Shown here: positions 7,754 through 57,000 of the stretch, one piece after another | Layout of the letters: every line of letters starts with the position of its first letter | How positions within the stretch are numbered: the first letter of the stretch is position 1 | Assembly: GCA_009103225.1 (NCBI GenBank) | Contig: RHPI01000772.1 | Coordinates: 379,810-443,809 of the forward strand | DNA from: Chlorokybus atmophyticus | Taxonomy: Eukaryota > Plantae > Mesostigma and Chlorokybus algae | Direction: 5' to 3' | DNA: 64,000 nucleotides | Translations under genes and position numbers: made by a program | Notes under the pieces: generated by a model | What the model was told of the DNA's origin: nothing | The model's input: the letters and a program-made list of their open reading frames with translations, nothing else | Databases searched by the model: none

Positions 7754-10700
7754 TGTTGAGAGTCATTCCTACATACGATCAGCATTGACCCTCCACACAG
7801 GAGTAGAAGGTCATAAGGACGAGCACTAGGTCCGGACTTAGCAAGATGGTGTCGTCGGACCAGACTCCGGACTCCAGACTGGAGCCTTACTAATTGCTTC
7901 GTATCTCCGCGTATACTTACTCATATTAGGCGTGTAAGAGCTTGTTGAAAAGCTCTGGTTGCAAGGAAGATAACACAGCTTAGAGCGCGTCAAAAGGCTG
8001 AGTATAGCTTACGCAGTGCTTGCAAACGTAGACGTGTGTGTAACTGGCTGGTATAAGAACCAGCGGACAACTTGTAATAGATGAGTGTGATGTGACTTGT
8101 GTATGCTCTGGTGGCGGTAGCTCTGTCTCTGTGCATCCATGCTTGCCTCAGCTACACGTGCATGCTAGTCCTTCAACAGGTTATGGGCCCACACTACGCT
8201 TGAGGAGTGTGAGACTAGCTTGTGTGCATTAGTAGTTCTACACTACGGTAGCTTGTTGGTAGCAGAGCCTTGGGTGTCAACTGCAAGAAAGGCAGGCTCG
8301 ACAGAAATGGAGGCGACCTACGACAAGGGGCAGATTGCAAAACTGGACACCGACAACTACAACACACGGTGCGTGGAGATGAAGGCCTTGCTCATCCATA
8401 AGTAGGTGTGGAAGTACGTTGATCCGAAGGCACCACCACCACCACCAGGAGCGAACACTGTGTGGTCAGAGCATTCAGCGGAAGCACACTCTTTGCTTGT
8501 GTTGAATTGCAAACCGCATCACTTTCCCATGCTCACTGCATGTGAAGATGGTAGACAAGCTTGGGAAAAGCTATCAGCCGTTTTCAGAGCCAAGAACAAT
8601 GCCAGAAAGTTGCATCTACGCAAGCAGCTCAGCGCACTCAGGAAGGAGGCAGCAGAACCCATCACAAAATATGTTGCGCGCACGAGAGAGCTGTGGGCGG
8701 ACCTCATCAACGTCGGCCACAACATGGGGGAGACGGAGGTAGTGCTGGCCATTGTTGCAGGGCTACCAGCAGAGTACGAGGTCGTCGCAACCCTGCTGGA
8801 GACGTCATCATCGGAGTTGACGTTGGACGATGTGCTACCGAAGCTGCTCACCGTGGAGCAGAGGGTTGTGAAGAAGGACGAGCAAGCGGATGCCGTCGCC
8901 TTCTACACCGGCAAGCACGCAAAGAAGAGCAACCATGAAGAGAAGTACAAGGGCAACAAGCCAGGCAATCCTCGTCACAAAGACCTCACATGCCATTGGT
9001 GTGGTTGGAAGGGGCACATTGTGAAGGATTGCAGGAAGAAACAACAGGGGCAACCCAGAGCAAGCACCAGCAACAGCGGTAACGAGCACCAACACAAGAA
9101 GAAACATATTGCCTTCACTGCATCCAGTTCGAGGGCGAGCACAGCTTTCTGGGTGGTGGACTCTGGCTGCGATCGTCATCTCTCACCAAACAAGGAGGTG
9201 ATGGAGGGCTACAAGAAGCTGACGTTCATGATCAAGGTGGCGGGCTTCGATGGTGAAATACTGGTGGCTGAGGGAGTTGGCAATGTACGACTCCAGTGCA
9301 AGGTTGGTAACACACTACCTGAGGTGTTGTTACGCAACGTTCTGCATGTCCCAAAGGCTATTGCGAGTCTATTCTCTGTGAGGGTTGCGGAGCGCTTAGG
9401 CGCGGAGATCCTATTTCAACACAAGGAGAAACATATCGCCTTCACTGCATCCAGTTCGAGGGCGAGCACAGCTTTCTGGGTGGTGGACTCTGGCTGCGAT
9501 CGTCATCTCTCACCAAACAAGGAGGTGATGGAGGGCTACAAGAAGCTGACGTTCATGATCAAGGTGGCGGGCTTCGGTGGTGAAATACTGGAGGCTGAGG
9601 GAGTTGGCAATGTACGACTCCAGTGCAAGGTTGGTAACACACTACGTGAGGTGTTGTTACGCAACGTTCTGCATGTCCCAAAGGCTATTGCGAGTCTATT
9701 CTCTGTGAGGGTTGCGGAGCGCTTAGGCGCGGAGATCCTATTTTTGAAGGGTGGCTGCACAGTCATCCTTGATGGGGTCGTGCACATGGTTGGAATCACT
9801 GATCCGGGAGGGCTCTACCACGTGGAGCAGCACTATAGAAACATTGACATTCAAGCCATGGTGGTAAAAGACAAGGAGTCGCCAACATTGTGGCATCAAA
9901 GGTTCGGGCATCTCAGCTACGTCAACCTCACTCGCCTTGTCGAGAAGATGGTCAAGGGCATCCATCTCAGCACAGAAGAACTCAAGAATGCATCAGGTGC
10001 ACTTTGTGAACCATGCCTGGTTGCAAAGCAGCATGCTATGCCATTCCCATCATCCTCTTCAAGCAGTCAGCATCCTTGTGAGCTTGTGCACATGGATGTC
10101 TGTGGCCCTATGCGCATTGTGGCGAAGGGAAGGGTCAGGTACTTTGCTACATTCCTCGACGACTGCAGCAAGCTATCCGTCATCTTTCCGTTGACACTGA
10201 AGTCAGAAGTTGCTGGAGCTGTGCGCACAGTTGTGGCCTTGTTGGAGACCCAGTCTGGCAACAAGATGAAGGCAGTGAGGAGTGATCGAGGAGGGGAGTA
10301 CATCAACAAGGAGTTGAAGGAGTTCTTCGCCAGTAAGGGCATACGCCACGAGACAACGGCACCCTACACCCCGCAGCAGAATGGAGCAGCTGAACGCCTC
10401 AGCAGGACACTCTTGGAGCGTGTTCGAGCCATGCTCAACGACACAAAAATGGAAGACAGTTTGTGGAAGGAGGCGGTACTCACTGCCAACTACATCCGCA
10501 ACAGGTCTCCGGTGAGCTCAGAGCAGAAGACTCCGTGGGAGCACTTCTATGGAGCCACACCAGATGTGAGTGGTATGCGTGTGTTTGGATGCACGGCATA
10601 TGCACTAGTGCCTAAACAGCTCAGGCACAAGCTGGAGCCGGTCAGCAAGAAGGGCATCTTTGTTGTCTATGAACCGGGTTCCAAGGCTTACAGGATCTTG

Positions 10701-12985
10701 CTCGAGGACACTCAGAAGATCATTGCAAGCAGAGAGGTGGTTTTCCACGAGGGATTCTCACAACCAGAAGCAGGCTTCTTTCCTGAAGATGAAGCACAGC
10801 CGGAGCATCCTGAAACAGTGGAGGCTACAGGCAAGGCCATCATCAACGACAAGGGTGAGCAGGACTCAGCTGTAGCAGGCCAAGAGGAGCCGTACCAGCA
10901 GGAGCACGCAGCTCGGAGATACCCAGTGAGGGAGAGAAAGGCACCTGACTTCTTACACAAGGCACACGTCGCCAGTGTGCAGAATGAGGAGCCAAGCACC
11001 TACGAGGAGGCATTGTTAGCACCAGATGCGGAGCAATGGCAGCGTGCTATGGACGAGGAGATTGCGTCACTCCATGCCAACAACACTTGGTCACTGGAGC
11101 AGTTACCGCAAGGAGTAAAGACCATTCCAGTGAAATGGGTCTTTAAGGTGAAGCGTGATGGTCAGCGCAACATTAAGCGCTACAAGGCAAGACTGGTGGC
11201 AAAGGGCTTCTTGCAGCAGGAAGGTGTGGACTTCAACGAAGTGTTTGCACCTGCAAGTAAGCATACCACCTTCCGTGCACTGCTAGCTATGGTTGCTGCT
11301 GAAGACCTAGAGCTGCATCACCTGGATGTGAAGACTGCCTTCCTCAACGGAGAGCTGGAGAAGGAGATCTTCATCGAGCAACCACCTGGATATGAAGAAG
11401 GGGAGAGAGGTACAGCGTGCAAGCTGATCAAGGCACTGTACGGGCTGCGACAGGCACCGCGTATATGGCACATCAAGCTCACCAAGGAGCTGGAGGCACT
11501 TGGCTTCACCGCATCCTCTGCAGACCCCGGGCTCTTCATCCATACAGACAACAAGGTCTGGCTGCTCGTGTATGTTGTTGATATCATCATTACCGCCAGG
11601 TAGGTGCACCACCTGCAGGAGATGAAACTTGCTCTACAGCAAGCATTCTCAGTTCGTGATCTTGGAGAGGCCAAGTGGTTCCTTGGCATGGTGATTGAGC
11701 GCGACAGGGCTGCACGCACAATCAAGATCAGTCAGGAGCAGATGGTGAGAAGACTCGTCACCAAGTTTGGGCTCACTGAAGCGAAGACCAAGACCACACC
11801 GTTGGCACTTGGCACTGCCCTCATCAAGGCAAAGGATGAGGAGGTACTCGACAAGGCTCAGTATCCATATGGTGAGCTGGTAGGCAGCATGCTCTATCTG
11901 GCAGTGTGCACACGTCCCGATGTTGCACATGCTGTGGGAGTACTTGCTCGCTATATGTCTGCACCGAGCATGGAGCACTGGAGAGCAGCAAAAGGAGTAC
12001 TACGCTATGTTGCTGCGAGCGCAACAATTGGCATCAAGTTTGGGAGCGGGAGCACTGAGTTGGAGGGCTACTGCGACTCGGACTTTGCTGGTGACCTCAA
12101 CAGCAGGAGGTCCACTACAGGCTACGTCTTCAAGCTGAACGGAGGCGTGGTGAGCTGGAACAGCAGGCTGCAGCCAACAACAGCAGCATCTACATCAGAG
12201 GCTGAGTACATGGCAGCGGCAGCAGCAGTGAAGGAGGCACTCTGGCTTCGCAAGCTCATGGCAGACTTGGAGCACCCCATGGCGTGCATCGTCATCAACT
12301 GTGACAACCAAGGAGCCATCAAGTTGTTAAAGCACCCTATCGCCTCGGCAAGGACGAAGCACATTGATGTCATGCATCACTTTGTGCGTGACAGAGTCAC
12401 AAGGAAAGAGGTGGAGTTCCGGTACTGCAACACTGAGGGCATGCTGGCGGACTTCATGACAAAGCCATTGTCACCGCTCAAGTTCAAGACTTGTTGCGCA
12501 GGACTTGGCATCTGTGTTTGACTACAGGAGCAAGCGTTGGAGGTCAAGCTGCTCGCGTGGGAGTGTTGAGAGTCATTCCTACATACGATCAGCATCGACC
12601 CTCCACACAGGAGTAGAAGGTCGTAAGGATGAGCACTAGGTCCGGACTTAGCAAGATGGCGTCGGACCAGACTCCGGACTCCAGACTGGAGCCTTACTAA
12701 TTGCTTCGTATCTCCGCGTATACTTACTCATATTAGGCGTGTAAGAGCTTGTTGAAAAGCTCTGGTTGCAAGGAAGATAACACAGCTTAGAGCGCGTCAA
12801 AAGGCTGAGTATAGCTTACGCAGTGCTTGCAAACGTAGACGTGTGTGTAACTGGCTGGTATAAGAACCAGCGGACAACTTGTAATAGATGAATGTGATGT
12901 GACTTGTGTATGCTCTGGTGGCGGTAGCTCTGTCTCTGTGCATCCATGCTTGCCTCAGCTACACGTGCATGCTAGTCCTTCAACA
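7754..12985 (+). mobile_element. Ty1/copia LTR retrotransposon, full length but inactivated
   Basis: LTRs 7754-8178 and 12564-12985 (TGTTG...CAACA); PBS GGTTATGGGCCC directly after the 5' LTR (copia-type half-tRNAiMet primer site); PPT-like cgcgtgggag before the 3' LTR; gag-PR-IN-RT-RH domain order. Confidence 0.97.
8307..12521 (+). pseudogene. copia gag-pol polyprotein with two in-frame TAG stops and a mutated RT catalytic motif
   Basis: ATG at 8307; TAG at 8403-8405 and 11601-11603. CCHC knuckle CHWCGWKGHIVKDC, protease WVVDSG (twice), integrase HQRFGH...CEPC and D,D35E, RT YVVD instead of YVDD, RNase H YCDSDFAG. Confidence 0.93.
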
Positions 12986-14100: not shown

Positions 14101-14501
14101 TGCTCTTAATAGCTTCTAATCTTCTCTTGAGTTTTGGCCATAGACTACCATATAGCTATTTTAAACCCCCCCCCCCCCCCCNCTTCTCTTTGAGGTGCGC
14201 ATCGACTGGTGCGCCCGCCAGACATTGGCTGCGCATCACCATTGCGCAGACTAGTAGGCTTCTTCGCCATCTACGGGCAGTAGCTGTGGGGTGGTGTTTG
14301 AATGGGCTCCCGTGCAAGCCACGACAACGGCGACGGAGGCTACTGCATCCTGGCATTAGTGACATCGACATGGTTGCGTGCGTGCATATGCAAATAAATT
14401 CGCTTATTATGCGACCATATTTACGGTACATATTGGAGTAGTTTTATACGTTGCAACCCAAATTACCTTTGATGTCTGTGCATAGAGCGTTCAGAAATCA
14501 G

Positions 14502-15949: not shown

Positions 15950-17506
15950 GACATTGCCTAAGTGTACCAATAGCTGCATTGATCGACTTCACCACTCCAC
16001 TTACAACAATATATGTGAATGCTTGCTAATGTAAAAATGCGCTGCATCCACCTGTATGGGCCCCTCTTTTATCAAATCATGAGACGTTAAGATGCAAGCA
16101 AAAGTGGTTGCGAGCAACTGAAAACAAATTCAGTTAAGATTCGAGATATGGTGTACAATCATATGATAACTATAAGGCTTCTTACTGCACGAACACTTAC
16201 AGCGCAAAATCGGCAAATGCAAGTACTTGGCTACATAAACGCCTATCAAACTCGTTTAAACAGTGTAACAGTATGCATCGCATAATGACATCACCTGATT
16301 TCATTTTACAGGATCCCGAGCCATACAAAGGAGTGTCATCCAAAATTTTATTGTGTCTATGCTTGCATATAAAACATCAGTGCATGAAATATGTATCATG
16401 GTATTACCTTTTCTGCACTTGCATTGATCAGCGGCGTGAGGGGAGTGTGCAAGCGCTTTGATTATGAATTTTGAGCTTCGATTTGCACTTATATTCAAAT
16501 TTTCAACATCACATACTATTACATATTTAATTGAATACACCACAACTGATTACAACTTAAAAAAAATCCTGCAAGATATTTGGTGCTATTTGGTGCAACA
16601 ATAGTCTGTTCCGCAACAGTATCTACGTAACGGAGAGGTTGAACAATGCAGTTGCAATCACATATGACATTATGTAGTTTATTAACATCGTGAAGCAATT
16701 TTTGGTGTTGAATTGCTTCATAGTGTTTTTCATGCACTTGTATGGCATGTTAGCGTTGTACTCCATCAACTTGTCATTATACATGTAGAATTAATCAATG
16801 TCATGTGTTGTTCATAATGAATAAACAGCAACACATGATATGAAAAAATCTGATATGCATATAAGTCTAAAGATTACAATCATTGAAGTGATCCTCTATA
16901 TGTTGTGCGTCCGCCAAAAATACAGGAATAACCTACAATCATGTTTAAAATCACTTCAATCATGGCGTTAAGTTGTTGATTTGTTATGATATTGATATTT
17001 GTTACGCCATTGATATTGACAATGAAACGCGATAAGTTGCTTTGAATGTATTAATGTAGCTTTTGGGCTAATGTGGCTGGGAGGTAGAACAAATCCTGAA
17101 ACAAATCATGATACTCTTGACCTTTAAGTTGTTGAGATTATGAATGGCTTTGGTCATGTCCAATACTTCGATACCACGGGTATTCACGGGAGTCAATGTT
17201 CACAAAAGTGAATAATGCTGGTCATTGTTGTTCAACAGGTTACTTACATGCGTGAGCCAGCAGTTGCTTACACGGAGGGACGCCAACGGCACTCAGCGGA
17301 TCGCTGTTTATCGCCCAACACAGATCCTGGAAATCCGCATCACCGCCTCGCTGCAAGATTTCGGGGCCACTGCCCCACTGGCCCATGTTCATGCACCCCG
17401 CAATTGAGATGAGCCACGGTTGAGTTGCAGTAAATCAGCGCAGCTGCGGCGGAGGCGGCGGCAAAGGAGGAGGAGCAGCAGAGGCAGGAGGACGCAAGAG
17501 GCAACC

Positions 17507-18662
17507 ATGTTGGTGTCGGAGAGGCAGAGGATGCAGGGCGGTGGGGTGGCCGTAGAGGCGTCGCCCAGCACTCGCGGGACAAGCGTCCGCCGCACAGGCT
17601 GGGGGCCCGACCTCAGCGGCATCCGCCTAGGCAACAACCCCACCGTCATCACCACCGCTGCCGGTAAGCGTGACCACGAGCACAATCATGACGACAACAT
17701 GCATGCCCAGAAGACTGTCTGCTTGAGCAATGCGATGTCACTGACTGTCGCACACTTGTCGTCATGACCAGGCTGGAACCTGGAAAGCACCTACGGGGAT
17801 GAGTGGAAAGCGTCAGGCTTTCAGCTCAACATTGGGTAAGTTAGAACAGGCGGCGTGCAGCATCGTAGTTGCGAGTGCAAGTGCGTTGGTGCGTGTAACC
17901 TTTGCGCATGTGTGTGTGATGCTGTGACAGTGACAGCTGTTTGTATGCCTTTGTTTCATTCATGTCACTGACGTATGTCATGTGCATGTAAACTTGTTCA
18001 GGTATGAGGCTACACCTCGTTATTTCAACGTGGGTGGCTCCCGCCTTCCTGTCAGTGTTGGTGCACGCATTAATTTGCTCGAGCCCGATATTGGTGCCCT
18101 AAAGGCATGGACGCCCGAGCTGTATGCACAGGTGCGATGCTCTTCTTAACCAACCTGCAATGCATGGGTGCACTGCAGGATGGTATGCAACCTCTCAATC
18201 TGGCACTTCGTGCCCTGGCTTGGCGTAATATGCAACCGCTTGTGCATATTCTGAATCACTGAATCAATAAATCCTCTACATGCTTTGCCCTATTTGACTT
18301 GGATACTGACATACGCGTGTACCTGTGTTTATGATAATCTATCAGACGGAGTACAAGCCCAACTGGAGGCACGCACAGGTATTACGTGAAGCAATAACTG
18401 CTATGCATGTAGAGTACTATTATGCACAAGCTGACAGTATATTTTGTATGCGCAGCCATTTGTGGGTGTCGGGGCGCGTGTTCGCATGCCATCCGATAAG
18501 GATTTCGCGGTGCAGCCACAACAGTACCTCACTGCGGGGGTGCAGTCTGAATATGCAAGGGGCTGGAAGGCCACGCTGCGCTATGCTGATGAGCTAGGCC
18601 GCTTTGACAACCTGCTCAAAACCAGCCCCACTGTTGAGATTGGCTGGGGGTACGATGTTTAA
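17507..18662 (+). CDS. Unknown 196-aa protein, predicted small outer-membrane-type beta-barrel, 5 exons
   Basis: Exons 17507-17663, 17772-17835, 18002-18131, 18346-18378, 18456-18662, all GT-AG with consistent phases and no internal stop. Eight alternating-pattern segments; C-terminus TVEIGWGYDV*. The gene model is well supported; the fold call is inference. Confidence 0.75.
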
Positions 18663-21325
18663 GGTTACAAACAGTGCAGCAAACAGGACGTGTGGGTAAG
18701 TTAGGTCAGTGTCATCTGGCTTCTGTCCCAACTGTATAGGTAACATAACTGCTTGTATATTTTGTATCGCACTACTTGCACATGTAAGTGGGTTACGGCT
18801 GGTTTGAATGTGCACGCTGCACATGGTGTAATGCACGATGTACACTTGACCACGAGTTGAATGTTGGCAGATATGTTTCTGGTATGGCTGTTGTGCACGT
18901 TGTTTGTACAACGCTGTCAGTGCACATTACGCACGTGAATGCGCAATGATATGCACGCATTCAACTACGAGGCAGTGAGTGTAGCAGAGCGTGCAGCAAG
19001 CTGAAGCCAGTGTTGAAATGTTCTGTCGATTCTGTAGGCAAGCTAGCCAATCTAAACATGTAAAACACTTCTTGCATGTAGACACCATAATAGAGACATC
19101 CACCCACCCGCAATGACAATGCATCAACATGACAACCCCGCAACAGCCCATCGCAATGGTAGAAACTCTACCTTGCCACAGACGAATGGTAACAAGCGAT
19201 TATGATACACTACGCATGTTTCTCTCCCAACTCTTGTAAACTTCTTGCCAATTGTGCATGTACTGTTTCAATCTTTCGAATGCACCATGCAGTTCTGCAT
19301 CAATAACCATTCCCAGTGTGACAAGTGGTGAAGAAACTTTAGAAAACCCTGAGTGCTTCATGCACAATAAGCGGAAATAAAAGGTTTTCCAAAAGTAGTC
19401 CGCATAGTGCAAATCTTAGCCATATGTGCTACCGAAGGAAACTGATTTGATTAAATAATAAGATGTGCCACACATGCAATAAGCCACATTTGGATACATT
19501 ACATGTAGAGTATATACAATTGCACATATTACTTTCACAAGAGTTGCTAAAAGCAAACTCCCAAAGCGGAAAGGGGCCATGCAAGTTGCACGCTCACAAC
19601 TATGCACAGCCAATAATAACTGCAATATTAGATGGGGGCCAAGTAGAGCTTTTACTCAACTATAACGACGGACATTGTGAACATTGCTTGTTAGTCGGCT
19701 TGCACCTAATCTGTGGCCCTTTCATTCTACCATTTACATCAGCATGAAAAGATAATACATCATTAGAACACTACTAGCGATGTATATACAAGCATTTGTG
19801 GGATGGTATGATGTAACAGCAAGTGACATTGCATTGCAGCAAAGTAACAGTGCATCATATGTTGATGCTGGCTGCTACGTGTCTACGATAAGTTCATAAC
19901 CACGCGGATACATTGTGGTGATAATTGGGGTAGCGTAGCGTAATGAAGTTATGGATGGTAGAACTTGGTGGTCAAGCATTATACGCTTGGCATAGGGTGT
20001 TTATCATGAATTCCTATACCCTAAGCATATTGTGGAGTTAAGTGATGTTATGCATGGTGACGCTTTAACATACATGTTGCAACATGCGTGGCGCACATAC
20101 TGTGCATGCTGCATTAACCTTTTGGAGTTGTATGGGTATAGATCGTGGCATGTCATGCACAAACATGCGCGGCGCATGTTTGTAACAAGCAGAGATGCAT
20201 AGCAAGCAGAGCAGGCACAACAAGCGGAGGAGATTAATATATATAACACCCAGGGCCACCTTCTTACTAGCATAAGTGATGCTTTGTGATGTGCAATGCA
20301 ATGTTGTAGGGCAGGCAGTTGGCAGCAGCAGGTAGCAATGGCTCAATCAACCAACCTGATGATACAAGGCAAGGAGTTTGGGATTGAGCGTGGATAGGAC
20401 AAGTAAAATTGGAGTGGTGTTGTGCTGTGCTATGACCTAATCCACTGCCCCCCGCCCCCGCCACGGCGTCAACATCTACAGCGCCGCCAGCAGCGACAGA
20501 ACTGCAATGGTCTTACCGCATATGACTTTAATCTTTGGGCCGGCAGTGTAACCAATACGTGTACATTAGTACAATACACTACTGATACCAGTGGCTCGCT
20601 AGCTTTGCTTGTTCGTAACCAGTGTTGTAACTTTTCATCATTCGTGTCCATCATCGTCGCAAAATGTTACCCCTGACGGCCGACTAAAAATATAGGACGA
20701 TCGTGGGTCTGACAATACTCAGTCAGATTGTCGTTGCTCAGTCTGTCGGCAATCTTGATACAGGGGCCTGAGCACAACGGCCGTTACCATCAGTCGACGA
20801 CCGTCTGCATAAAGGGACTAACTCTAACTAACAGGTATGTGTAAGGACAGTAGGTGTTGTAAGGATCAAGCGATAGGGACTTAACCTAACTGACAAGTAA
20901 TTAACCGGTAACTAATAGTTATGCACCGGCCACCGTACATTAACTGATTGGAACTGACAGGTATCTCATGGTACCCGCCGTTACTGAAGGGTACCTTCAA
21001 AGGTACTTGTTGGGTACCGTTCAGTCATGATTAGATACCTTACATGAGTGTCGTCATTGATGATGAAATAATTTGTTACATGTGTTGCAAGTCATACTAG
21101 GAGTATTCCACAACATGAACTATTATGAGCGGCTACTACTACCACTACTACCACCCTAATTCAAGGCCTTATACTAAGCCGCCGCTCCTGCGCTCCACCT
21201 CCGCCGCCGCTCCTGCAAGCACAAGTCAATCACACCAGCGCCATTAACAGCAACATACACACCAATGCTCACATTGTGACAACTTACATACACATGATGT
21301 TGCTTGCCATATACTGCCGCCGCCG

Positions 21326-24699: not shown

Positions 24700-26900
24700 C
24701 TAGTGAATGGTGCGAGCAGGGGCGTTTTCTTTAGGGTATATATACTCGCAGCCCCAGAGATTTAAGACGTGGTGTCCAAGATCCTTCCAAGTGGCCCACA
24801 TGGATCAATCAAGCAACGGGCCCATTTGGCCAGTAACGCAAATGTCTACCATTTATAATCGTGCACACCGAGGCCGCCATGCTGAGGCTGTCGACCTGTA
24901 TGCCAGTTCACCAATTCTCTAGATGCATGAGACGTTCGTTTCCACAAGGCGGACAATGGAGGTGATGACGCTCAGAGTAGAAGCTAAGGGGGCGAGTACT
25001 GCTGCTAGATGCCACATGCACGCAAGCACTCCGTCTGAGATGAGATGAGCGCTCGCCTCATAAGCTTGAGCGGCTGACGGGACTAGTGTTGCAGCCATCT
25101 CTGTATGGTGGAGGTGACTTGCTCAAAGAGTTGGCCTTGCTAGAGAGACAACCTTATGAGTACCCGCATGATCTTCACGGCCTCGTGTGGTGGAAGCCAT
25201 CGAAGGCTTCAATCCTAGAGGTTGTCAACGTGAGGTCTCAACGGAATGCCAACTGTTTTTTCAAGGTTAAGTTGGGAATCCGAAGTCAGGCAGTATATAG
25301 AGAAACATGAGTGAAGGCCCGCAAATGCTGCAATGAGCGTGATGTAGACTCTGGTCTCATTTGCGTAGCCGGTGTAGCGAACCTCCGTATCCTTAGCTGG
25401 GCCGTCGGGGGGGGGGGGGGGGGGNGGAAAGGAGTGAATGAGCGCGCCCAAGGCTTCAGTAGCAAGAATGAACAAGGACGGGGATAATGGGCAGCCTTGG
25501 CGGACACTGCGCAAAAGGCAGAAAGAGCGGGAGAGAACTTTTTTGGGGAACTCATGATGTTCACTCGGCTGTAACCCCACCATTGAGCATACGCACCCCA
25601 CTCCATCAATCTAGCGGGGAAGCCCAAGCAGAGAAGGAGGGCTTGTCGATGAAGTCGCAATCTGAACAATCCAAGGCTTTCTGAAAGTCAAGGAGTAAGA
25701 GAGCCCCAGATTGTTTCGAGGCTTCCAAGCCATCACATTAAGGGCCGCGAGTATGTTGCCTAAGATGTAATGATGGGGGGCAAAGCCCGCATGAGCGTGG
25801 TGGATGCAAGTGGGAAAGGGGCGAACTCGAGTGGCGAAGGCTTCAGCCAAAATTTTAAAGTGGACGGTGAGTAGAGGGATGGGGCGCCAGTTCTTGAGAT
25901 TGCCGCAATCAAACTTTTTATATATAAGTACTATCACTCCTGCTCGTTGCGTGTCCTCAAGAGTATGGAGATACAACACATGCTGGTGAAGTAACATGGC
26001 CCAAGCAGCGGCAAAAAGTGTTGCCAGAAGGCAGAGAGGCCATCCTCATCAGGCAATTTGTGAGGGGACATAGCAAAGACTGCTGCTTGAAGTTCCTTAG
26101 CCGAAAGGGTTTGCTCTAGTGCTTCCGCGTCTTGTGTAGAGACGTGGGGTGTGAGGGCTACTAGGCATTGCTCCGTGGCTTGGCGAATGGCTGCAGTGTT
26201 GCGAGCTTCGGGGGAAATGAGTCATGTGTAATATGTGGCTGCCTTTCGCCCATCTCTTTCGAGTCCGTTTTCGGAGGTGAGAGAGTGGTGTCACCTTGAG
26301 AGATGTAGTGCATGTGGTTGGGAGAGCACGGGGCCTGGCTGGACTTGAAGAAAACGAGGTCATACGCTCGCCTTCAAGACTCCATCTGATGGCGCGGCGA
26401 ACTGCAAAATGCTGCAAGGCGACACCGTGTTCCTGCTGCAGCCGAATGATTAACTTCGCATGCTCTTCAAGCAACGAAGAGTTCAAGGAGCGCGATGAGA
26501 GATGCTCCTCCACAGACTCCAAGATACGATATACCTGAGAGAGGCAAGCTTAAAGGTTTTAATGCGTGCTCGTTGTATGATGTGTGGGCGAGCAGCTGCA
26601 GCATTGCAGGAGAGCATGCTTTCAAGTCAGTCAATGTGAGAGGAGGGAGGTAGTGGGGTTGGTGAGGAGCTGACTTCCCACACATCCTCTACCTCCGCAA
26701 CAAATTGTAGATTATAAACAAGTAGGGGGTCAACCTTCCAAAGATTTCCCCCATGGCTTGAGGTATGGGCTGACAAGAGTTCAAAAAAGGTGGGCTTGTG
26801 GTTGGATGACCACTCAAAGGTAATGATAGGAGCCTCTTTCCACAAGGACAGCAGATCTCTAGAGACGTAGAATTCATCAAAGTGAGGCGAGCAAGACGGT
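24700..26900 (-). mobile_element. Decayed L1/Tx1-like LINE ORF2 remnant
   Basis: GVIVLIYKK...NWRPIPLL...KILAEAFATR and RSVRQGCPLSPSLFILATEAL RT motifs; many frameshifts; poly-G plus N at ~25408-25425. Confidence 0.85.
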
Positions 26901-42450: not shown

Positions 42451-45400
42451 ATGGCGCTGATGCGCGTGGCGGCGGCGCTGCTGTTTTTGCTCGTCCAGCT
42501 CCTCACTGCTGGTGAGAAGAACTGCGAGGCATTGCGTGTGCCTCGTACTTCTGGTCTTGGCCAGTCCGGTTTGGTGGCAAAGTGAATGCATGCACAAGTG
42601 CAGTTTAAGAAATGGATGAAGCTTGATGGCGTGTCTGGCCAACACTCTGGCAGCATTGTGGCAAGGTTGTAGTACTTCTGTCCGAGTGCATTCATCGATG
42701 GCAGCAATTAACATGACACAGAGAGGCGACATGCATGAAACATGGACATGCACTTGAGCATGAACATTCAAACCCCCCCTCCTTTCCCTCCTCGTCACAG
42801 GAAAAGAAGGAGGCTTTCTCTCTTTGCATGTGTGCAGTGTGTTGGCTTTCTTCTTGTATTGCACCAGTTGCTAGCCACGCTTTCTGATGCTAACAACTTG
42901 AACTATGTGTTGTGCAGCTGCCACGGCTGTAATTTCTGGACGACTGTTCTGCGACATGTGCAACAGCGGCATCCTAGTCCCCATCTCGCGCGGCGAGGTA
43001 TGCTTCGGTGCTAAGGGCAGGCAAGTCCCCTCAGCAATGGGTGGCCAGGACCAACTGAGTCAAGGCTCTCTATGTCCACACGTTTGCAACATGTGTCTCC
43101 CTACATGTGCGAGGGAGAGAGCCCAATCACTTCTAGTTGATATATCATGCGTGTGCAGGTGGTGCTGAACTGCACGACGTATGTCCGTATCAAGGGCGAT
43201 AATGATTTTTCTTCTTATTCTGAACTCCATGCGGTGTTGTTGCAGTCCAGCCAATCGACGATTACAAATGCAGATGGCACATTTAGCTTCCCCAATGTCT
43301 ATATGATAGACCAATATGTCGAACGCGTGAAAAACACCTCCGTGCTGCCTTATTATGACGACTATGATGTCATTGTGGACTTTCCAGTGTACTGCGACGT
43401 GTATGTCCCTGCATCAGCGCCATGCACTGCTGCGGCCATAGCGTACCCTATCAGCAACAACGTTACCTGCACAAACCGGCAAGGACGCTACTCTTATGAC
43501 TCTGCCTCAGGCCTCGCCTCTGTGAACGATCCACAGGATGCCTCCACTTATGCCCTTGGCAACTTTTGCCTTGCGCCGGCGCAAACACCTGTACCGCCGA
43601 CGTGCCCATCCCTTCCGCTGCGCCCTCGCTGCGGCGGCTGTTCTACACCAAGTCCGTCCCCGCCGGCAAGCAAGCGTATGATGCCGCCCCGACGAGTTTG
43701 GAAGGAGGTTGGAGATTGCCTTTTGGAACGATGCAACTGGCCGTAGTGTGACGGTGCTTGAAGCCTGCACCTACCCTTACTCTCCCCACAGCGTGGAAGC
43801 TATCGGTAGTAGCTATGACGGTTACGCTGGCAACCTTCAAGTCGTAGGAGGTACGTGTATGAGAGACACAGATGTGCGCAAATGAAACAATGCCAGGATG
43901 CCTGCTTGAACCTTGAGCGTATGCAATGGCAGAGAACCTCAACTTCTTGGGGCGCAACTGCTCCACTCGCGCCGTGGGGGTGTTTAGCAAGCCTGCGGCA
44001 TGGCATCCTGACCGCTACCAGCGCAGCTCGCGCTTTGCTCAACCCGTTCTCATCAATTCCAACTACACTTACTACAATACGTTTGCTGTTAATGTGGATG
44101 GTGAGACAGCTTGCTCGGGAGAGTGCAAGGGAGCGCGATGCATTGTACAGGCATCTCATGGCTCTCTTGTGGTGATGCAGATAGCGGAAAGGAGTACGTG
44201 TACTTTGCGGGTTGATATCCGGCTGGAGATGGCATCTCGGATGTCACGCATTTTGCCGTACAGACTGCCACCTGGCCCGAGACGGTCGTCCTGGATGTGT
44301 ATGAAGATTACCAGTACACAGGCGAAAGAAGCCCAGGATATGGATGGGATGCGTTGCACAGCATTTTTGTCGATTCCTCAGGTGCGTGTGTGACAGCACA
44401 GATGCAAAAGTGTGTCATTCACCATGCTTGTGAGCAACTGCTGGTAGTATTGCTTTTGTGTAGCGGATCCTTAGAATGCAGAAGGGAGGGAAGCGGGCAT
44501 TGGGAGAGAGGAAATGTGGGCACCCACGGAGGGGCACGGGGTGGGGCTGCTAAGAAGAAGTCCCCACCCTCATCTCCAACCGTGATGGCTGCGTGCTTGC
44601 GCACATGCACACCCACACGCGCATACACCCTCAAGCTCACGCTTAGGCCTACACGCGCGCACTTGCAAGCGCGCACATGTGCACGGGCGCAAATGCGCAC
44701 ACAGTTACGCGTGCACGCACATTCACAAATACACACCCATGTGCACACGCACGCACACTCACATGTGCACACGCTCACCCCCTNNNNNNNNNNNNNNNNN
44801 NNNNNNNNNNNNNNNNNNNNNNNNNNNNNNNNNNNNNNNNNNNNNNNNNNNNNNNNNNNNNNNNNNNNNNNNNNNNNNNNNNNNNNNNNNNNNNNNNNNN
44901 NNNNNNNNNNNNNNNNNNNNNNNNNNNNNNNNNNNNNNNNNNNNNNNNNNNNNNNNNNNNNNNNNNNNNNNNNNNNNNNNNNNNNNNNNNNNNNNNNNNN
45001 NNNNNNNNNNNNNNNNNNNNNNNNNNNNNNNNNNNNNNNNNNNNNNNNNNNNNNNNNNNNNNNNNNNNNNNNNNNNNNNNNNNNNNNNNNNNNNNNNNNN
45101 NNNNNNNNNNNNNNNNNNNNNNNNNNNNNNNNNNNNNNNNNNNNNNNNNNNNNNNNNNNNNNNNNNNNNNNNNNNNNNNNNNNNNNNNNNNNNNNNNNNN
45201 NNNNNNNNNNNNNNNNNNNNNNNNNNNNNNNNNNNNNNNNNNNNNNNNNNNNNNNNNNNNNNNNNNNNNNNNNNNNNNNNNNNNNNNNNNNNNNNNNNNN
45301 NNNNNNNNNNNNNNNNNNNNNNNNNNNNNNNNNNNNNNNNNNNNNNNNNNNNNNNNNNNNNNNNNNNNNNNNNNNNNNNNNNNNNNNNNNNNNNNNNNNN

Positions 45401-45911
45401 NNNNNNNNNNNNNNNNNNNNNNNNNNNNNNNNNNNNNNNNNNNNNNNNNNNNNNNNNNNNNNNNNNNNNNNNNNNNNNNNNNNNNNNNNNNNNNNNNNNN
45501 NNNNNNNNNNNNNNNNNNNNNNNNNNNNNNNNNNNNNNNNNNNNNNNNNNNNNNNNNNNNNNNNNNNNNNNNNNNNNNNNNNNNNNNNNNNNNNNNGCCC
45601 CCCCCCCCCCTCCTGCGTTCCACCATGCGCTCTCACCCTCCCCTCTTACATCTACAAATGTTAACGCAGACTACCTTTTCTTCAGCGCAATGAACGTGTT
45701 GAACTTCGACAGCAGCGATGCAACCCGTGGGCCCATGGAATTGTTACAGCTGGTGGGCAAGGCGGAGCTTGACGCTTGTCTTGCAGTTTCTGGCAGCAGC
45801 GATGAAGACAAGCGCAAGCCGTGTGCTGCGACAGGGGTTGCCACTCGTGGCAACCGTCCCGTGCACATTGTGACTCCCCCCACGGGCGGCAGCATCGCCC
45901 TGTTCTATTAG
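42451..45911 (+). pseudogene. Secreted multi-exon protein, copy A (signal peptide, Ole e 1/prealbumin-like N-terminus), disrupted
   Basis: Exon 1 MALMRVAAALLFLLVQLLTA; exon 2 VISGRLFCDMCNSG; TITNADGTFSF; frameshifting ~124-bp insert at 43573-43700; TGA at 44213-44215 where copy B reads LYP; N gap 44784-45596; last exon ends GGSIALFY*. Confidence 0.65.
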
Positions 45912-48027
45912 CTGATGGTGAGCGCATGCTCCCTCGTGCACATTTGTCTGCGTGGTCTGACAAATGCAAGTGTTTGCAGGGGATGAGTGGACAACCATGC
46001 CTCCATCATGTCAACCGCTAAAGGCTGGCCTTAGCGTGTAGGCAACCGTGTATGCAACCAAGTCATACATGGTGTGTTGCATGCTAGTCGCCTCCTTGCC
46101 CTACAAGCGTTATGCCTCCAGAAACAAATGTTTCACAAAGTGCATGCAATCATGCATGCAAAAGCAAGCATGCGTGTGTCCGTGTGTGCGGGAGGGGGGA
46201 AAGGGGGGGAGGGGCATACCTGAGGTAAGCTAGGCCAGGTGCATTCGCGACGGCAAGGGCAAAGAGCACCGCCGAAGCAGCAGCAGGTGTGAGACCGTAA
46301 TCATGGCTGCACGCAGCCCCACTGCAGACTGCAGAGCAAGCAAGCATTAGCATGAAGGCGGGACAGCAAACACAAATGCACACAAGCGACACTGTATTAT
46401 ATACATGTGATCTCTTTCTATCGACAGCAAGCATACATACGCCTAATGGAGTGTCGTGGCATTAAAGTCCCCATCGGACATGACCACATGTCCACCACTT
46501 GTTTGTATATGCAATGCTTGTGTGGCAGCACATTATAATAGTGTCAGATGAGAGTGCCAGGGGTGGCTGATAGACTCTCAATTGTCTGCGCATACATGTG
46601 GCGTCATGGTGCCATTTCCTCACACTTTGCTTGGCCATGGGTCACATCTTAGAAGGACTGCAAACACCATGGGTTCACACAAATAGGGTGATTCCGCAGG
46701 CATCGTGTAATCTTGAGTGCTGTGCTGATGGCCGTTGCTCTACATCCGATCGCCTGCAGCTTGACAGTGCCATCAGCAGAGCTCACAATTTGCTTTGCGA
46801 CCTTGATCGACGATGTTGCTATGCTCGACGAGCATGGCAGAATCTTCACGGGCGGGCTGAGGATTGACAGCCCTAGTGGGCTGGTCATCGACCACATGGT
46901 GCTGGACCTGCTGCTCTGGCAAGGGCAAACCTGTGATGGCTGCGACGGCGGTACTGGGCAAAGCTCTTCTTATTGGCTGGTTGCAAACTAATTCCCACCT
47001 TAATACCAACTTCCTTGACGAAGACGACAGCCTTTTGTCTGTCCATTGGCATAGCCATATTCTGCCACTAAGGACATCGGCAAGCAAGTCGCCGCCACCA
47101 ACCATAGCGCAGCCGCTCCCTCCGTAAGTTGACAGCCGCATCATGGACAATGCGACTGTCAATTCTTGACTCTATGTACTCACTGGATTTGGCTATATCG
47201 AATTGTGGAATCCGCCGTTCAATTCTTTTTCGTTGCACATCTACGCATAGCCCAATTCTGCGCAAAAATTAGCTAGAAAGCATACAGCTAGGGTAATTCC
47301 GCAGGCATTGTGTAATCTTGGGTGCTGTGCGGATGGCACCGTTGCTCTGCATCCGGTCGGCAGATCAACAGTGCCATCAGCGCAGAGGTTACAATGTGCT
47401 ATGCCCATTATCTAATATGCTTGGATAGATGGTCAGGAGAGAGGATGGGCATGTCTTGAATCCCAGCCTCCGCGCAATCTTAAGTTGAGCTTCTCAACTA
47501 TGAGGTATATCATATATCTTAAACAACACTTGTTTGGTACATGGCAGCATGAGGGATGGGATGGTTGGCCCTGTTAATGCATCAACGTTTATGAATTGAT
47601 GCCCTCACGGGGTCGATCAGCCGGCCGGCAAGAAGTTGGCCCCAGGTGACATTATGCGACAGTATCCTCTCTCGAGTAACTACATCACGAGTAATCGCGA
47701 AAACAGCAAATCCACAGCTAAGAATACCATGTCCTCGTCCAGTCGGGTTTTTGGACGGTTACACCGGCGACCTTGATCTCCGCCAAGGTATTAACGTCAT
47801 GAAATGCAGCACGCGAAATCCACGACGACCGCAAGTTATCTCGCGCAACGTGGAGGCCGCGTTGCCGTGGCTGTGGCGGCGGCGCCTGGTGGCAATAGGC
47901 GCGGTGCCGCTGTCGCAGCACCATGTGTGCACGATCATTCTCTAATGCGGCCAGACAGCAATAACAAGGATGAAACTGGGACTCTCGAACGTTGGATGTG
48001 AGTAACATGTCGTGTAGGGTTTGCCTC

Positions 48028-51738: not shown

Positions 51739-54013
51739 TACCTTAGAGGGCCCGTACATTAACATTGGTACAACCTTAGTTAGGGCTTAAAGCCCTAGGT
51801 TTTACACTTGCATAACATAATTATGCAAGTGTATCACTTGCATAGTGCATATATGTAGTATGTTATATATGTATTATGTATACATATGCAAAATGCATGT
51901 ATGGTGTATAGTATAATGTACTAAAATATAGCGTACAACATATGCTTATGGCACATAAGCAATGGTATTGCATAAGATTTGACGTAGTCTATAAGAAGGC
52001 GGCGCCAAATGGTCACACGACATGACCATATGGCGCCCCCCCCCCAGCTTGCCATCACACCNGGCACCCGCGACCGGGAGACTGTCGGGCGGAACTGTGC
52101 GCGGCCCCGCCTGTCTCTGATTGGCTATTAGCCATCGACTGTTCGGTTTGTTCAACAGACCTTGACCGTTTGAAACACATCCCCACTGCTCATGTATATG
52201 CCCAAAAAATAAATAACAAATGAGCACAACAAGGTGCACATAGGGCGGCACATTATTTCACATGGTATGGGCATATAACACACTTATTAAGGTAGTACAT
52301 TACACAATAACGTTTTGACCGTGTCACGTGAAGCGGTTCTCAGTGTATAATGCAAAGGTTACGATTTGCAAAATTATGATAACCTTAAACACCTTAACGT
52401 TAAGATTCAACCAAATGGTAAATAGCGCCGTCGGACCATCGTTCAGATATATAAACTATACTGCAAATGGTGTATAGACTTGACAAAGGCCGTTGCCATA
52501 AAAAAGGCAAAAAAAATGCCAATCATTGCAAAGATGCTCATAAATGTCGAAGGCATCTCAGCGGCAACGCCATTCCTCATAACGAGTCCGAGTACGGGCT
52601 TTTGGGCGCTAACTTGGCAACAGTTCGCAGTTATACGCGCGCGTCTTGGGTGGTACGAGGTCGGAGTGGGCCCCATACCCCAAACATCTGCCGCCATCAG
52701 TACCCATCACTTTTAACTGTTTCACACCCTACCACTTCACACCAACAATTACCCGCTAACATAAAAGGAGCAGCATACATGGTCTTTAGTCGAATCAATA
52801 ATATCAATATGCATGCCAGTAGTTGCAACTACATATAATGAATCGTACAGTACACATGTATATAAATATTGTGTATTTACATGGTGCTGATGTATGCAGC
52901 TGTTGGTGCATGCATCGCGTGATACATAATCGCAAACATCTGGCAAGTGAGGCAGTCGCTACTTAAGGATAAACAATAATTATTTTGCAAACACCTCACT
53001 AATAGACCGGTGTTGTTATAGTCTAATTGGTCAATGTCTAGGTCATCGATAGTTGGCTTACAGTCCTGGCCGCTTTACCCGCGCGGGTTCAACTCCCAGT
53101 GGTGTAGCAATTGCTTATTGTTGATGCATACTTTCTTTTTGCTGCAAATTGCGGCCATGTCATTAACATCCATCTCCTTAATGCGTGACCAAAAAGTATT
53201 AAAATATGTGACCATTATTAAGTTTAAGAGTAGATGGACCGACTTAATGCACGCCATCTACTTCACCTAAATGCCTGCAGGATACTAAATTAAGTTGTAA
53301 CCAAGGCAGGAAAAGAGGCAAAAACCAGTACCTCGATTGCCAATAAATACGTAACATAGTTATGGCTAGATCTCTACTACCAAGTTGTGGTCAGAGCCAG
53401 ACTGATGGAGCCATTTCCACCGGTGCAAATAGAGGTGTGCTTGTATAGAACTCCCCATTGAAGCTGATGTATAATACCGCCAGGATCATCCATGATGGTG
53501 GACCTACCTGAAGGCTATGGCAGGGCTTTGGTTGAACTCAGCATGTTTGCAGTCCTTTGAGATGTGAACCATGGCCAAGCAAAGTGTGTAAAGAAATGAC
53601 ATCATGACGCCACATGCATGCGCAGACAATTGAGAGTCTATCAACCACCCCAGGCGCTCTCAACACTAATACAGCACTATTACAATGTGCTGCCACACAA
53701 GCATTGCATGTTGGCAAACGAGTGGTATACATGTGGTCATGCCCGATGGGGACTTTGATGTCACAACACTCCATCAGGCGTATGTATGCTTGATAGAAAG
53801 AGATCACATGCATACAATGCAGTGTCGCTTGTGTGGGTTTGCGTTTGCTGTCCCGCTTTTGTGCTAATGCTTGCTTGCTATGCAGTCTGCAGTGGGGCTG
53901 CTTGCAGCCATAATTGCGGTCTCCCACCTGCTGCTGCTTCGGCGGTGCTCTTTGCCCTTGCCGTCGCGAATGCACCTGGCCTAGCCTGCCTCAGGTGTGC
54001 CCCCCCCCCGCCC

Positions 54014-57000
54014 CCNNNNNNNNNNNNNNNNNNNNNNNNNNNNNNNNNNNNNNNNNNNNNNNNNNNNNNNNNNNNNNNNNNNNNNNNNNNNNNNNNNNNN
54101 NNNNNNNNNNNNNNNNNNNNNNNNNNNNNNNNNNNNNNNNNNNNNNNNNNNNNNNNNNNNNNNNNNNNNNNNNNNNNNNNNNNNNNNNNNNNNNNNNNNN
54201 NNNNNNNNNNNNNNNNNNNNNNNNNNNNNNNNNNNNNNNNNNNNNNNNNNNNNNNNNNNNNNNNNNNNNNNNNNNNNNNNNNNNNNNNNNNNNNNNNNNN
54301 NNNNNNNNNNNNNNNNNNNNNNNNNNNNNNNNNNNNNNNNNNNNNNNNNNNNNNNNNNNNNNNNNNNNNNNNNNNNNNNNNNNNNNNNNNNNNNNNNNNN
54401 NNNNNNNNNNNNNNNNNNNNNNNNNNNNNNNNNNNNNNNNNNNNNNNNNNNNNNNNNNNNNNNNNNNNNNNNNNNNNNNNNNNNNNNNNNNNNNNNNNNN
54501 NNNNNNNNNNNNNNNNNNNNNNNNNNNNNNNNNNNNNNNNNNNNNNNNNNNNNNNNNNNNNNNNNNNNNNNNNNNNNNNNNNNNNNNNNNNNNNNNNNNN
54601 NNNNNNNNNNNNNNNNNNNNNNNNNNNNNNNNNNNNNNNNNNNNNNNNNNNNNNNNNNNNNNNNNNNNNNNNNNNNNNNNNNNNNNNNNNNNNNNNNNNN
54701 NNNNNNNNNNNNNNNNNNNNNNNNNNNNNNNNNNNNNNNNNNNNNNNNNNNNNNNNNNNNNNNNNNNNNNNNNNNNNNNNNNNNNNNNNNNNNNNNNNNN
54801 NNNNNNNNNNNNNACACAAGGATTACTTGCTGGAGCGTCGTATGCTATGGCGTCCGCTTGCAACCCAAGTGGGCGATTGCTGAGGATGGGGACGGGGCCT
54901 TCTCCGGATATGTTGAACACTGACAGCAGTGGCCCGTCTCGCGCGTGATCCATGCCATAGTGTAACACAAACACCCTCGTGTGTACTGTCATCAACCATG
55001 TGGTAAGCAATGCTTTTGGATCATCGTTTGCGCCAGTGCGCGTACACGTGCGTGCGTTTGTATGTGCACCTTGGTCGAAAGACATAAATCTGACACAAAA
55101 GTCCCACAGCTGCTGGTTGGTGATCGAGCGATAATTGGGAGAGATGGCTCCGTAGCTGACGGAGCAGGTTGGGTGTATGCCATGCTGGTCTTGCCAAGCC
55201 CACCACACCCTGTGCGGCGTCACTGCGAGCCGCACAATACACAAGCACATGTAAGAGTCTCATCACATGTCTAAAGCTTAGAAGTCAACTGTTAGCAAGG
55301 AGAGCGCTTCACTACGCAGCCATCACGGCAGAGGATGGAGGGTGGGGAGTTCTTCTTAGCAGCCCCACCCCCCGTGGCCCTCCGTGGGTGCCCACATTCC
55401 CTCTCTCCCAATGCCCGCTTCCCTCCCTTCTGCATTCTAAGGATGTGCGACACAAAAGCAACACTACCAGCGGTTGCTTACAATTATGGTGAAAATAACA
55501 TGCTTTCTCACCCACTCGCCCACTTCGTTCAGAACTACACACTTCACACGTTTGGCATCCGTGCTGTCACACACGCACCTGAGGAGTCAACATGAATGCT
55601 GTACAACGCATCCCATGAATATCCCGGGCTTCTTTCGCCTAAATACAGGTAATCTTCATACACATCCAGGATGACCGCCTCGGGCCAGGTGGCAGTCTGT
55701 ACGGCAAAATGCGTGACATACGAGATGCCATCTCCAGCCGGATATAGAGCCGCAAAGTACACGTACTCTTTTCCGCTATCTGCATCACACCACAAGAAAG
55801 CCATGAGATGCCTGTACAATGCATTGTGCGCTTCCTCGCGCTCTCCAAAGCTGTCTCACCATCCACATCAACAGCAAACGTATCGTAGTAAGTGTAGTTG
55901 GAATGGAAATGAACGGGTTGAGCAAAGCGCGAGCTGCGTTGGTAGCGGTCGGGATGCCATGCCGCAGGCTTGCGAAACACCCCCACGGCGCGAGTGGAGC
56001 AGTTGCGCCCCAAGAAGTAAAGGTTCTCTGCCATTGCATACGCTCGGTGGTTCAAGCAGGCATCCTGGCATTGTTTTCATATGCGCACCTCTGTGCTCAC
56101 ACACACGTACCTCCTACGACGTGAAGGTTGCCAGGGTAAAAGTACGTGCTTGCAGTGCTTAGAGTAAAGTCGACCGCTTCCACGCTGTGGGGAGAGTAAG
56201 GGTAGGTGCAGGCTTCAAGCACTGTCACACTGCGGCCGGTTGCATCGTTCCAGAAGGCAATCTCCAACTTCTTTTCTCTAAGGCAGAAGTTGCTCAGGGC
56301 ATAAGTGGAGGCATCCTGTGGATCGTTCACAGAGGCGAGGCTTGGAGCAGCCTGATAAGGGTCCGGGGGTTGATTGCTTCCTTGCCGACTTGTGCAGTTG
56401 ACGTTATTGCTGATAGGGTAGGCGATGGCGCTGATGCAGGGACATACACGTCGCAGTGCACTGGGAGGGTCACACCGTAGTAGTCGTCATAATAAGGCAG
56501 CACGGAGGTGTTTTTCACGCGTTTAGTGTATTGGTCTGTCATATAGACATTGGGAAGGCTGAATGTGCCATCTGCACTTGTAATGGTCGACTGGACATAC
56601 ACATCGCAGTGCACTGGGAGGGTCACACCGTAGTAGTCGTCATAATAAGGCAGCACGGAGGTGTTTTTCACGCGTTCAACGTATTGGTCTGTCATATAGA
56701 CATTGGGAAGGCTGAATGTGCCATCTGCACTTGTAATGGTCGACTGGCTGAAGTGCAACAACACCGGATGGACCCCGTAGTAATCTTCATCCCCGTTAAA
56801 GACATGGACATACGTTGTGCAATTCAGCACCACCTGCATGACATATGAACTAGAAGTGATTGGGCTCGCTCTCTCGCACATGTGTAGAGAAAACATGTTG
56901 AAAACGTGTAGACATCTAAGGAGCCTCGACTCAGGTCCTGGCTTCCACCCACTGCTGAGGGGACCTGCCTGCCCTTAGCACCGGAGCGTACCTCGCTGCA

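Follow-up and report, generated by a model that had tools for sequence, protein, structure and literature searches.

The 64,000-nucleotide stretch of Chlorokybus atmophyticus DNA analysed here (the window) contains a genuine five-exon nuclear gene, probably restricted to its lineage, whose product most likely forms, over residues ~44-196, a closed eight-stranded transmembrane barrel, for which we infer a place in the outer membrane of an organelle. The computations support the interpretation reached earlier from the letters alone, that of an eight-stranded barrel which is possibly an undescribed organellar outer-membrane protein. No barrel of eight strands has been described for mitochondrial or chloroplast proteins, and the literature yielded no description either of the family to which this protein belongs or of any eukaryotic eight-strand membrane barrel. 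If the reading is correct, the protein would represent a new class outside the roughly eleven known families of organellar beta-barrel. Four barrel families are confirmed in mitochondria, where a eukaryote-wide survey concluded that few are left to find (PMC3045335), and plastids have about ten barrel categories, all of at least 12 strands (bioRxiv 10.64898/2026.07.15.738633). Chlorokybus belongs to the streptophyte class Chlorokybophyceae, and if a streptophyte nucleus does encode a barrel of OmpA/OmpX size, this short eukaryotic catalogue would gain a further size class. It would also provide a minimal natural substrate for studies of SAM/OEP80 recognition, of insertion and of sorting between mitochondrion and plastid, and its confinement to one early-diverging lineage could show how organellar barrels are gained.

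Gene structure, expression and strain variation

The sequence-only reading had described a five-exon ORF of 196 aa. When the model was rebuilt, the spliced CDS on the + strand came to 591 nt, encoding 196 aa followed by TAA, with GT..AG ends at all four introns (Table 1), and the eight strand-like segments quoted in that reading are all present in the translation, which ends EIGWGYDV. The transcript contigs agree with this structure, as does the JGI protein P0003 (EukProt jgi/Chlat1/6751/Chrsp50S06444, JGI Chlorokybus atmophyticus), to which the spliced model is identical letter for letter. The gene is already present as an unnamed JGI gene model, and the novelty lies in its interpretation.

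Table 1. Features of the gene, in window coordinates
Feature	Positions	Strand	Remarks
5' UTR, minimum extent	17429..17506	+	window-identical X3 contig, spliced to exon 2, has its start at 17429
Exon 1	17507..17663	+	codons 1-52 plus 1 nt; joint in contigs
N-terminal extension, codons 1-34	17507..17608	+	fast-evolving, Arg/Ser/Thr/Gly-rich; missing in paralogue P0001
Intron 1	17664..17771	+	108 nt, GT..AG; skipped in X2 contig and one X3 contig
Exon 2	17772..17835	+	strand 1 and beginning of strand 2
Intron 2	17836..18001	+	166 nt, GT..AG; joint in all four runs
Exon 3	18002..18131	+	strands 2-4
Intron 3	18132..18345	+	214 nt, GT..AG; joint in all four runs
Exon 4	18346..18378	+	11 codons; end of strand 4 and turn
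Intron 4	18379..18455	+	77 nt, GT..AG; joint in all four runs
Exon 5, coding part	18456..18662	+	strands 5-8; stop TAA at 18660-18662
EIGWGYDV, last eight codons	18636..18659	+	C-terminal strand, beta-signal-like motif
3' UTR	18663..18782	+	ends at observed poly(A) addition site (X3); contigs reach 18739-18782

Transcript support comes from four sequencing runs of one organism (X1-X4), whose type is unrecorded and which are assumed here to be RNA; their contigs were placed on positions 17300-19100. An X2 contig of 582 nt covers 17504-18650 with 0 mismatches and skips exactly the four predicted introns, and the contigs of X1, X3 and X4 have the same joints, with intron 1 placed 1-3 nt off and without GT..AG ends in the divergent contigs of X3 and X4. 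Bins within the introns have essentially zero depth, and the loose end of an X3 contig carries a poly(A) run behind position 18782. All four junctions are thereby borne out by transcript contigs, and the gene is genuine and expressed. Positions 17429-17506, as read from the sequence, contain no ATG, so that the ATG at 17507 is the first of the mRNA.

Contigs of X3 and X4 that are 90-99% identical to the window (over 17483-18782) were found alongside reference-identical contigs from the same study, and the likely source of these divergent versions is other strains of Chlorokybus or cryptic species, the run names being coded. The X3 version has a 2-nt insertion behind position 17497 in the 5' UTR and the stop codon TAG instead of TAA. 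In exon 5, all nine of the listed X3/X4 substitutions are synonymous, including TAA>TAG and AGG>CGG. The nonsynonymous substitutions in exon 1 number 10 of 13 in X3 and 4 of 6 in X4, almost all lying within the N-terminal extension, where replacements between strains are often to Ser or Thr. From this substitution pattern, together with the comparison of paralogues described below, it follows that residues 1-34 form a variable extension and that the barrel is strongly constrained; the barrel region is under purifying selection.

The DNA of the window is nuclear and eukaryotic, and copia-type retroelements are present near the gene. A Ty1/copia-type retroelement polyprotein occupies 8406-12521 (+) as two long ORFs of 1065 and 305 aa, the first of which contains an internally repeated segment. 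N bases at about 14150-14200 and about 25400-25440, visible as X beside proline runs in the ORF translations, are likely small assembly gaps. The 2-kb bins 44001-46000 and 54001-56000 have a GC fraction of 0.33, compared with about 0.5 in the rest of the window.

Predicted fold and strand faces

Structure was predicted by AlphaFold2 from an alignment of three sequences, namely P0003 and its two Chlorokybus paralogues P0001 and P0002; the runs for P0003 and P0001 share this alignment and are not independent. For P0003, eight strands were predicted (residues 46-58, 64-84, 87-101, 109-120, 127-138, 148-159, 165-174 and 187-195) with pLDDT 60 and pTM 0.53, the pLDDT being ~30 in the N-terminal extension, and for P0001 the same eight-strand topology was obtained with pLDDT 83 and pTM 0.76; only one of five models converged in each case. 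Nearly all of the best 50 Foldseek matches in the PDB were bacterial outer-membrane or designed transmembrane barrels in both runs, led by OmpA TM (E 7e-5 to 2e-4) and then OmpX, Ail, PagP, PagL, NspA and OmpW. In a VIA-align comparison with 48,161 chains, PagL reached Z 12.1, the alignment covering 133-134 of 146 residues, followed by designed transmembrane barrels (TMBs; Z 11.8-12.1), OprF-N (Z 11.2-11.6) and OmpA (Z 10.3-10.8), and in a shape search of the ESM Atlas the matches were bacterial clusters of OMP_b-brl, OmpA_membrane and PagL at TM 0.5-0.66, with 0.60-0.66 for OMP_b-brl/OmpA_membrane. Independently of AlphaFold2, language-model features placed both exon 5 and the whole protein beside PagL, YfaZ, OMP_b-brl, KdgM and OmpG, and the named matches were all outer-membrane families. 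The eight strands predicted for both proteins and the leading Foldseek matches bear out the eight-stranded barrel that had been proposed from the letters, and at the level of prediction the fold class is that of an eight-stranded OmpA/OmpX/PagL-type barrel.

The residue pattern of the strands is consistent with this assignment. Each predicted strand has one hydrophobic or aromatic face and one polar, Gly-rich face, with Trp or Tyr at the strand ends, and amphipathic periodicity of the beta type exceeds that of shuffled sequences (for P0003 and P0001, z 2.7 and p 0.004; for P0002, z 2.0); no such excess was seen for periodicity of the helical type. The polar face carries eight glycines together with the conserved arginines R96, R136, R138 and R170 and the conserved glutamates E76, E113 and E189. 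Judged from the residue pattern, and not from model coordinates, the Gly-rich charged face would be the lumen side. The protein would then be a minimal eight-strand barrel with a narrow, largely salt-bridged lumen, and because of this narrow interior a small gated path for ions or solutes, or a role in membrane anchoring, appears likelier than that of a general porin or an enzyme.

Among known systems, the bacterial eight-strand barrels (OmpA, the OprF N-domain, OmpX/Ail, NspA, OmpW, PagP and PagL; Pfam clan MBB) are the best structural matches, with Z 9-12. The predicted protein resembles them in its eight antiparallel strands over ~150 residues, in having both termini on one side, in the alternating faces and aromatic ends of its strands and in the polar, charged, Gly-rich interior that we infer here. 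It differs from them in that its gene is nuclear and has four introns, and the product has neither a signal peptide nor a terminal aromatic residue, has very short loops and gives no sequence-profile match. A His/Ser active site of the PagL type is absent, since not one His is shared by all three paralogues. Short loops are also predicted in common with designed eight-strand TMBs (PDB 6x9z and 6x1k; TM-score 0.65-0.66, target-normalised, Z 11.8-12.1); these proteins are artificial, and all that the likeness to them shows is that the model represents a transmembrane barrel in minimal, idealised form.

Relatives, origin and alternative readings

Relatives of the protein appear to be confined to Chlorokybus. 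When 1.84 billion representative proteins were searched by phmmer with the 68 aa encoded by exon 5, a search that relatives below about 30% identity would escape, only P0001 (166 aa) and P0002 (260 aa) were returned, and a word search from P0001 led to P0003 (196 aa). Word-index searches of 5.8 billion proteins, in whose profile version the best 8000 candidates were scored, likewise found only the three Chlorokybus paralogues, all from EukProt Chlorokybus atmophyticus, and pattern scans detected no relative in 185,579 bacterial and archaeal genomes or in JGI metagenomes. The description of the gene as an orphan is thus not quite accurate, since its own genome contains two paralogues. P0002 (Chrsp50S06448) lies on the same scaffold as Chrsp50S06444, five model numbers away and outside the window, and P0001 is Chrsp17S02591; an exact-protein look-up for the locus of P0001 gave no match, and tblastn of the paralogues against the window revealed no second copy. 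The paralogues are 48-62% identical to P0003, with 66 invariant columns that, except for Met1, all fall from residue 35 onward. P0001 starts with MDLSKVRVG directly before the barrel, and at the corresponding position P0002 carries an internal Met.

One possible origin, compatible with the reading as an organellar outer-membrane barrel, is horizontal acquisition, by the Chlorokybus lineage, of a gene for a bacterial eight-strand outer-membrane protein, followed by the disappearance of the signal peptide and the arrival of introns and extra copies. This scenario is tentative: in its favour, the fold class is otherwise known from bacteria only and the distribution is limited to one genus, but no bacterial or metagenomic relative was recovered by sequence, Pfam or NCBIfam, and the gene has four spliceosomal introns and no mark of a recent transfer. 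Weak internal similarity hints at another source of such a barrel. Residues 86-125 of P0003 resemble residues 126-163 (VSVGARINL..EPD and VGVGARVRM.PSD; PELY..TEYxxxW and PQQY..SEYxxxW), and residues 44-85 resemble residues 164-196 (GWNLESTYGDE and GWKATLRYADE). The hairpins thus paired are S3-S4 with S5-S6 and S1-S2 with S7-S8 (p ~0.03 each); over six comparisons the repeats gave z ~2-3, with marginal p values of 0.01-0.06 for single sequences and 0.03-0.04 for profiles. This weak similarity could reflect hairpin duplication or merely shared structural constraints. It is an evenly balanced proposition that the three-member Chlorokybus family constitutes a new class, the smallest, of eukaryote-encoded organellar barrel, having arisen by bacterial capture or by hairpin duplication.

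A soluble protein with an eight-stranded up-and-down barrel, of the lipocalin, avidin or BFA1-like kind and possibly ligand-binding, is an unlikely alternative to a membrane barrel, in which the N-terminal extension would serve as an organellar transit peptide. Soluble eight-strand up-and-down barrels, including designed soluble barrels, avidins, lipocalins, YceI-like proteins and chloroplast BFA1, were recovered by VIA-align at Z 7-10, slightly below the membrane barrels, and the 34 N-terminal residues, which are rich in Arg, Ser, Thr and Gly, poor in acidic residues and fast-evolving, would suit a transit peptide. Membrane barrels, however, take the leading places among the structural matches and make up almost the whole of the best 50 from Foldseek in both runs, and the language-model features name only outer-membrane families. 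The arrangement of residues also argues for a membrane barrel, in that the polar face, with its eight Gly and paired Arg and Glu, suits a narrow interior and the other face is uniformly hydrophobic. Furthermore, the paralogue P0001 lacks the N-terminal extension entirely.

That the protein belongs, in strongly diverged form, to one of the known organellar barrel families (OEP21, OEP24, OEP37, OEP40, VDAC/Tom40 or Omp85) is very improbable, and the earlier remark that it was not recognised as any of the characterised organellar barrels agrees with the searches of Pfam, NCBIfam and PDB sequences, in which no OEP or VDAC family was matched. In Pfam, no barrel family was hit at E<=10 by hmmscan with any of the three proteins (OMP_b-brl, OmpA_membrane, OmpW, PagL and YfaZ included), NCBIfam likewise yielded neither a barrel nor an OEP family, a profile built from the paralogues matched no PDB chain sequence at E<=10, and phmmer searches with single-exon translations against Pfam and PDB gave no match. 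No OEP or VDAC structure was present among the best 50 matches of four structure searches. OEP21, OEP24, OEP37 and OEP40 of plants and green algae, which are presumed to be inserted by OEP80, resemble the Chlorokybus protein in being small, nuclear-encoded and devoid of a presequence, and in having a polar, charged lumen (for the Chlorokybus protein, as suggested by its residue pattern). They differ from it in strand number, with 12-22 strands as opposed to the eight predicted here, and no sequence or structural match to them was found; OEP21 and OEP40 have 12 strands, OEP24 and the Omp85 proteins 16 and OEP37 22 (bioRxiv 10.64898/2026.07.15.738633). The mitochondrial barrels VDAC, Tom40, Sam50 and Mdm10 are similar in that the C-terminal strand fits PoxGxxHyxHy in two of the three paralogues, but they have 16 or 19 strands, and no match to Pfam Porin_3 or Omp85 was obtained. 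The candidate considered was OEP21, which is of similar length to P0003 and is the only solute barrel whose occurrence is reported throughout Chloroplastida (bioRxiv 10.1101/2025.06.18.660430; 10.64898/2026.07.15.738633). It had been suggested by an 'IGYEA'-like motif that we take to occur in OEP21. Identity with OEP21 was set aside, as no structure search supported it and neither did the PDB profile search, provided that the chains searched include the solved structure of pea OEP21.

A spurious or non-functional ORF, whether a mis-annotation or a transcribed pseudogene, would accord with the absence of a known domain and the very narrow distribution, but is effectively refuted by the spliced, polyadenylated transcripts, by the wholly synonymous listed exon-5 substitutions between strains and by three paralogues (48-62% identity) that keep open frames and 66 invariant positions.

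Terminal segments and proposed route to the membrane

The C-terminal strand had been said to end in a canonical mitochondrial beta-signal. Formally, EIGWGYDV of P0003 does fit PoxGxxHyxHy, as does EVGWGYDL, both with the hydrophobic residue after the Gly that the refined motif PoxGhyxHyxHy includes, but Glu occupies the Po position, and the C-terminus of P0002, EINYGYQV, has Asn in place of the Gly, so that the motif fits two of the three paralogues and the term canonical goes too far. Known mitochondrial barrels have no acidic residue at the first position of the beta-signal, and its Gly is apparently invariant among them; the motif itself is poor in information (Imai et al. 2011, PMC3045335). 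The three paralogues end in V, L and V, and a C-terminal aromatic residue is found in none of them.

No Sec signal peptide or hydrophobic N-terminal segment is visible in the three paralogues. Because of this, and because P0001 begins at the barrel, synthesis in the cytosol followed by post-translational insertion into an organelle appears the plausible route for an organellar outer-membrane barrel. The protein would be made without a Sec signal peptide and be inserted into the outer membrane of the mitochondrion or the plastid by an insertase of the Omp85 type, for which Sam50 (TOM-SAM) and OEP80/Toc75-V (TOC/OEP80) are candidates, with the C-terminal strand or hairpin probably being the element recognised. 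When yeast is made to express bacterial barrels, these are reported to arrive in the outer membrane of its mitochondria (PMC3045335), and another study reports that four beta-strands suffice for mitochondrial recognition and assembly of a barrel protein (PMC3093317). An organellar insertion route would be plausible even for an acquired bacterial gene.

In composition the N-terminal extension, with only two acidic residues among its 34, resembles a peptide that targets proteins to organelles, an uncommon feature in barrels of the outer membrane. In P0003 it could be a cleavable targeting peptide, and this would count against an outer-membrane location. Toc75 is the known exception, being an outer-membrane barrel with a targeting peptide.

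As for the choice of organelle, plant barrels whose penultimate strand ends with a hydrophilic residue are directed preferentially to mitochondria (reviewed in PMC8836251). The penultimate strand of the Chlorokybus protein ends in the invariant Asp173, and by analogy this may be taken as a weak hint pointing to mitochondria.
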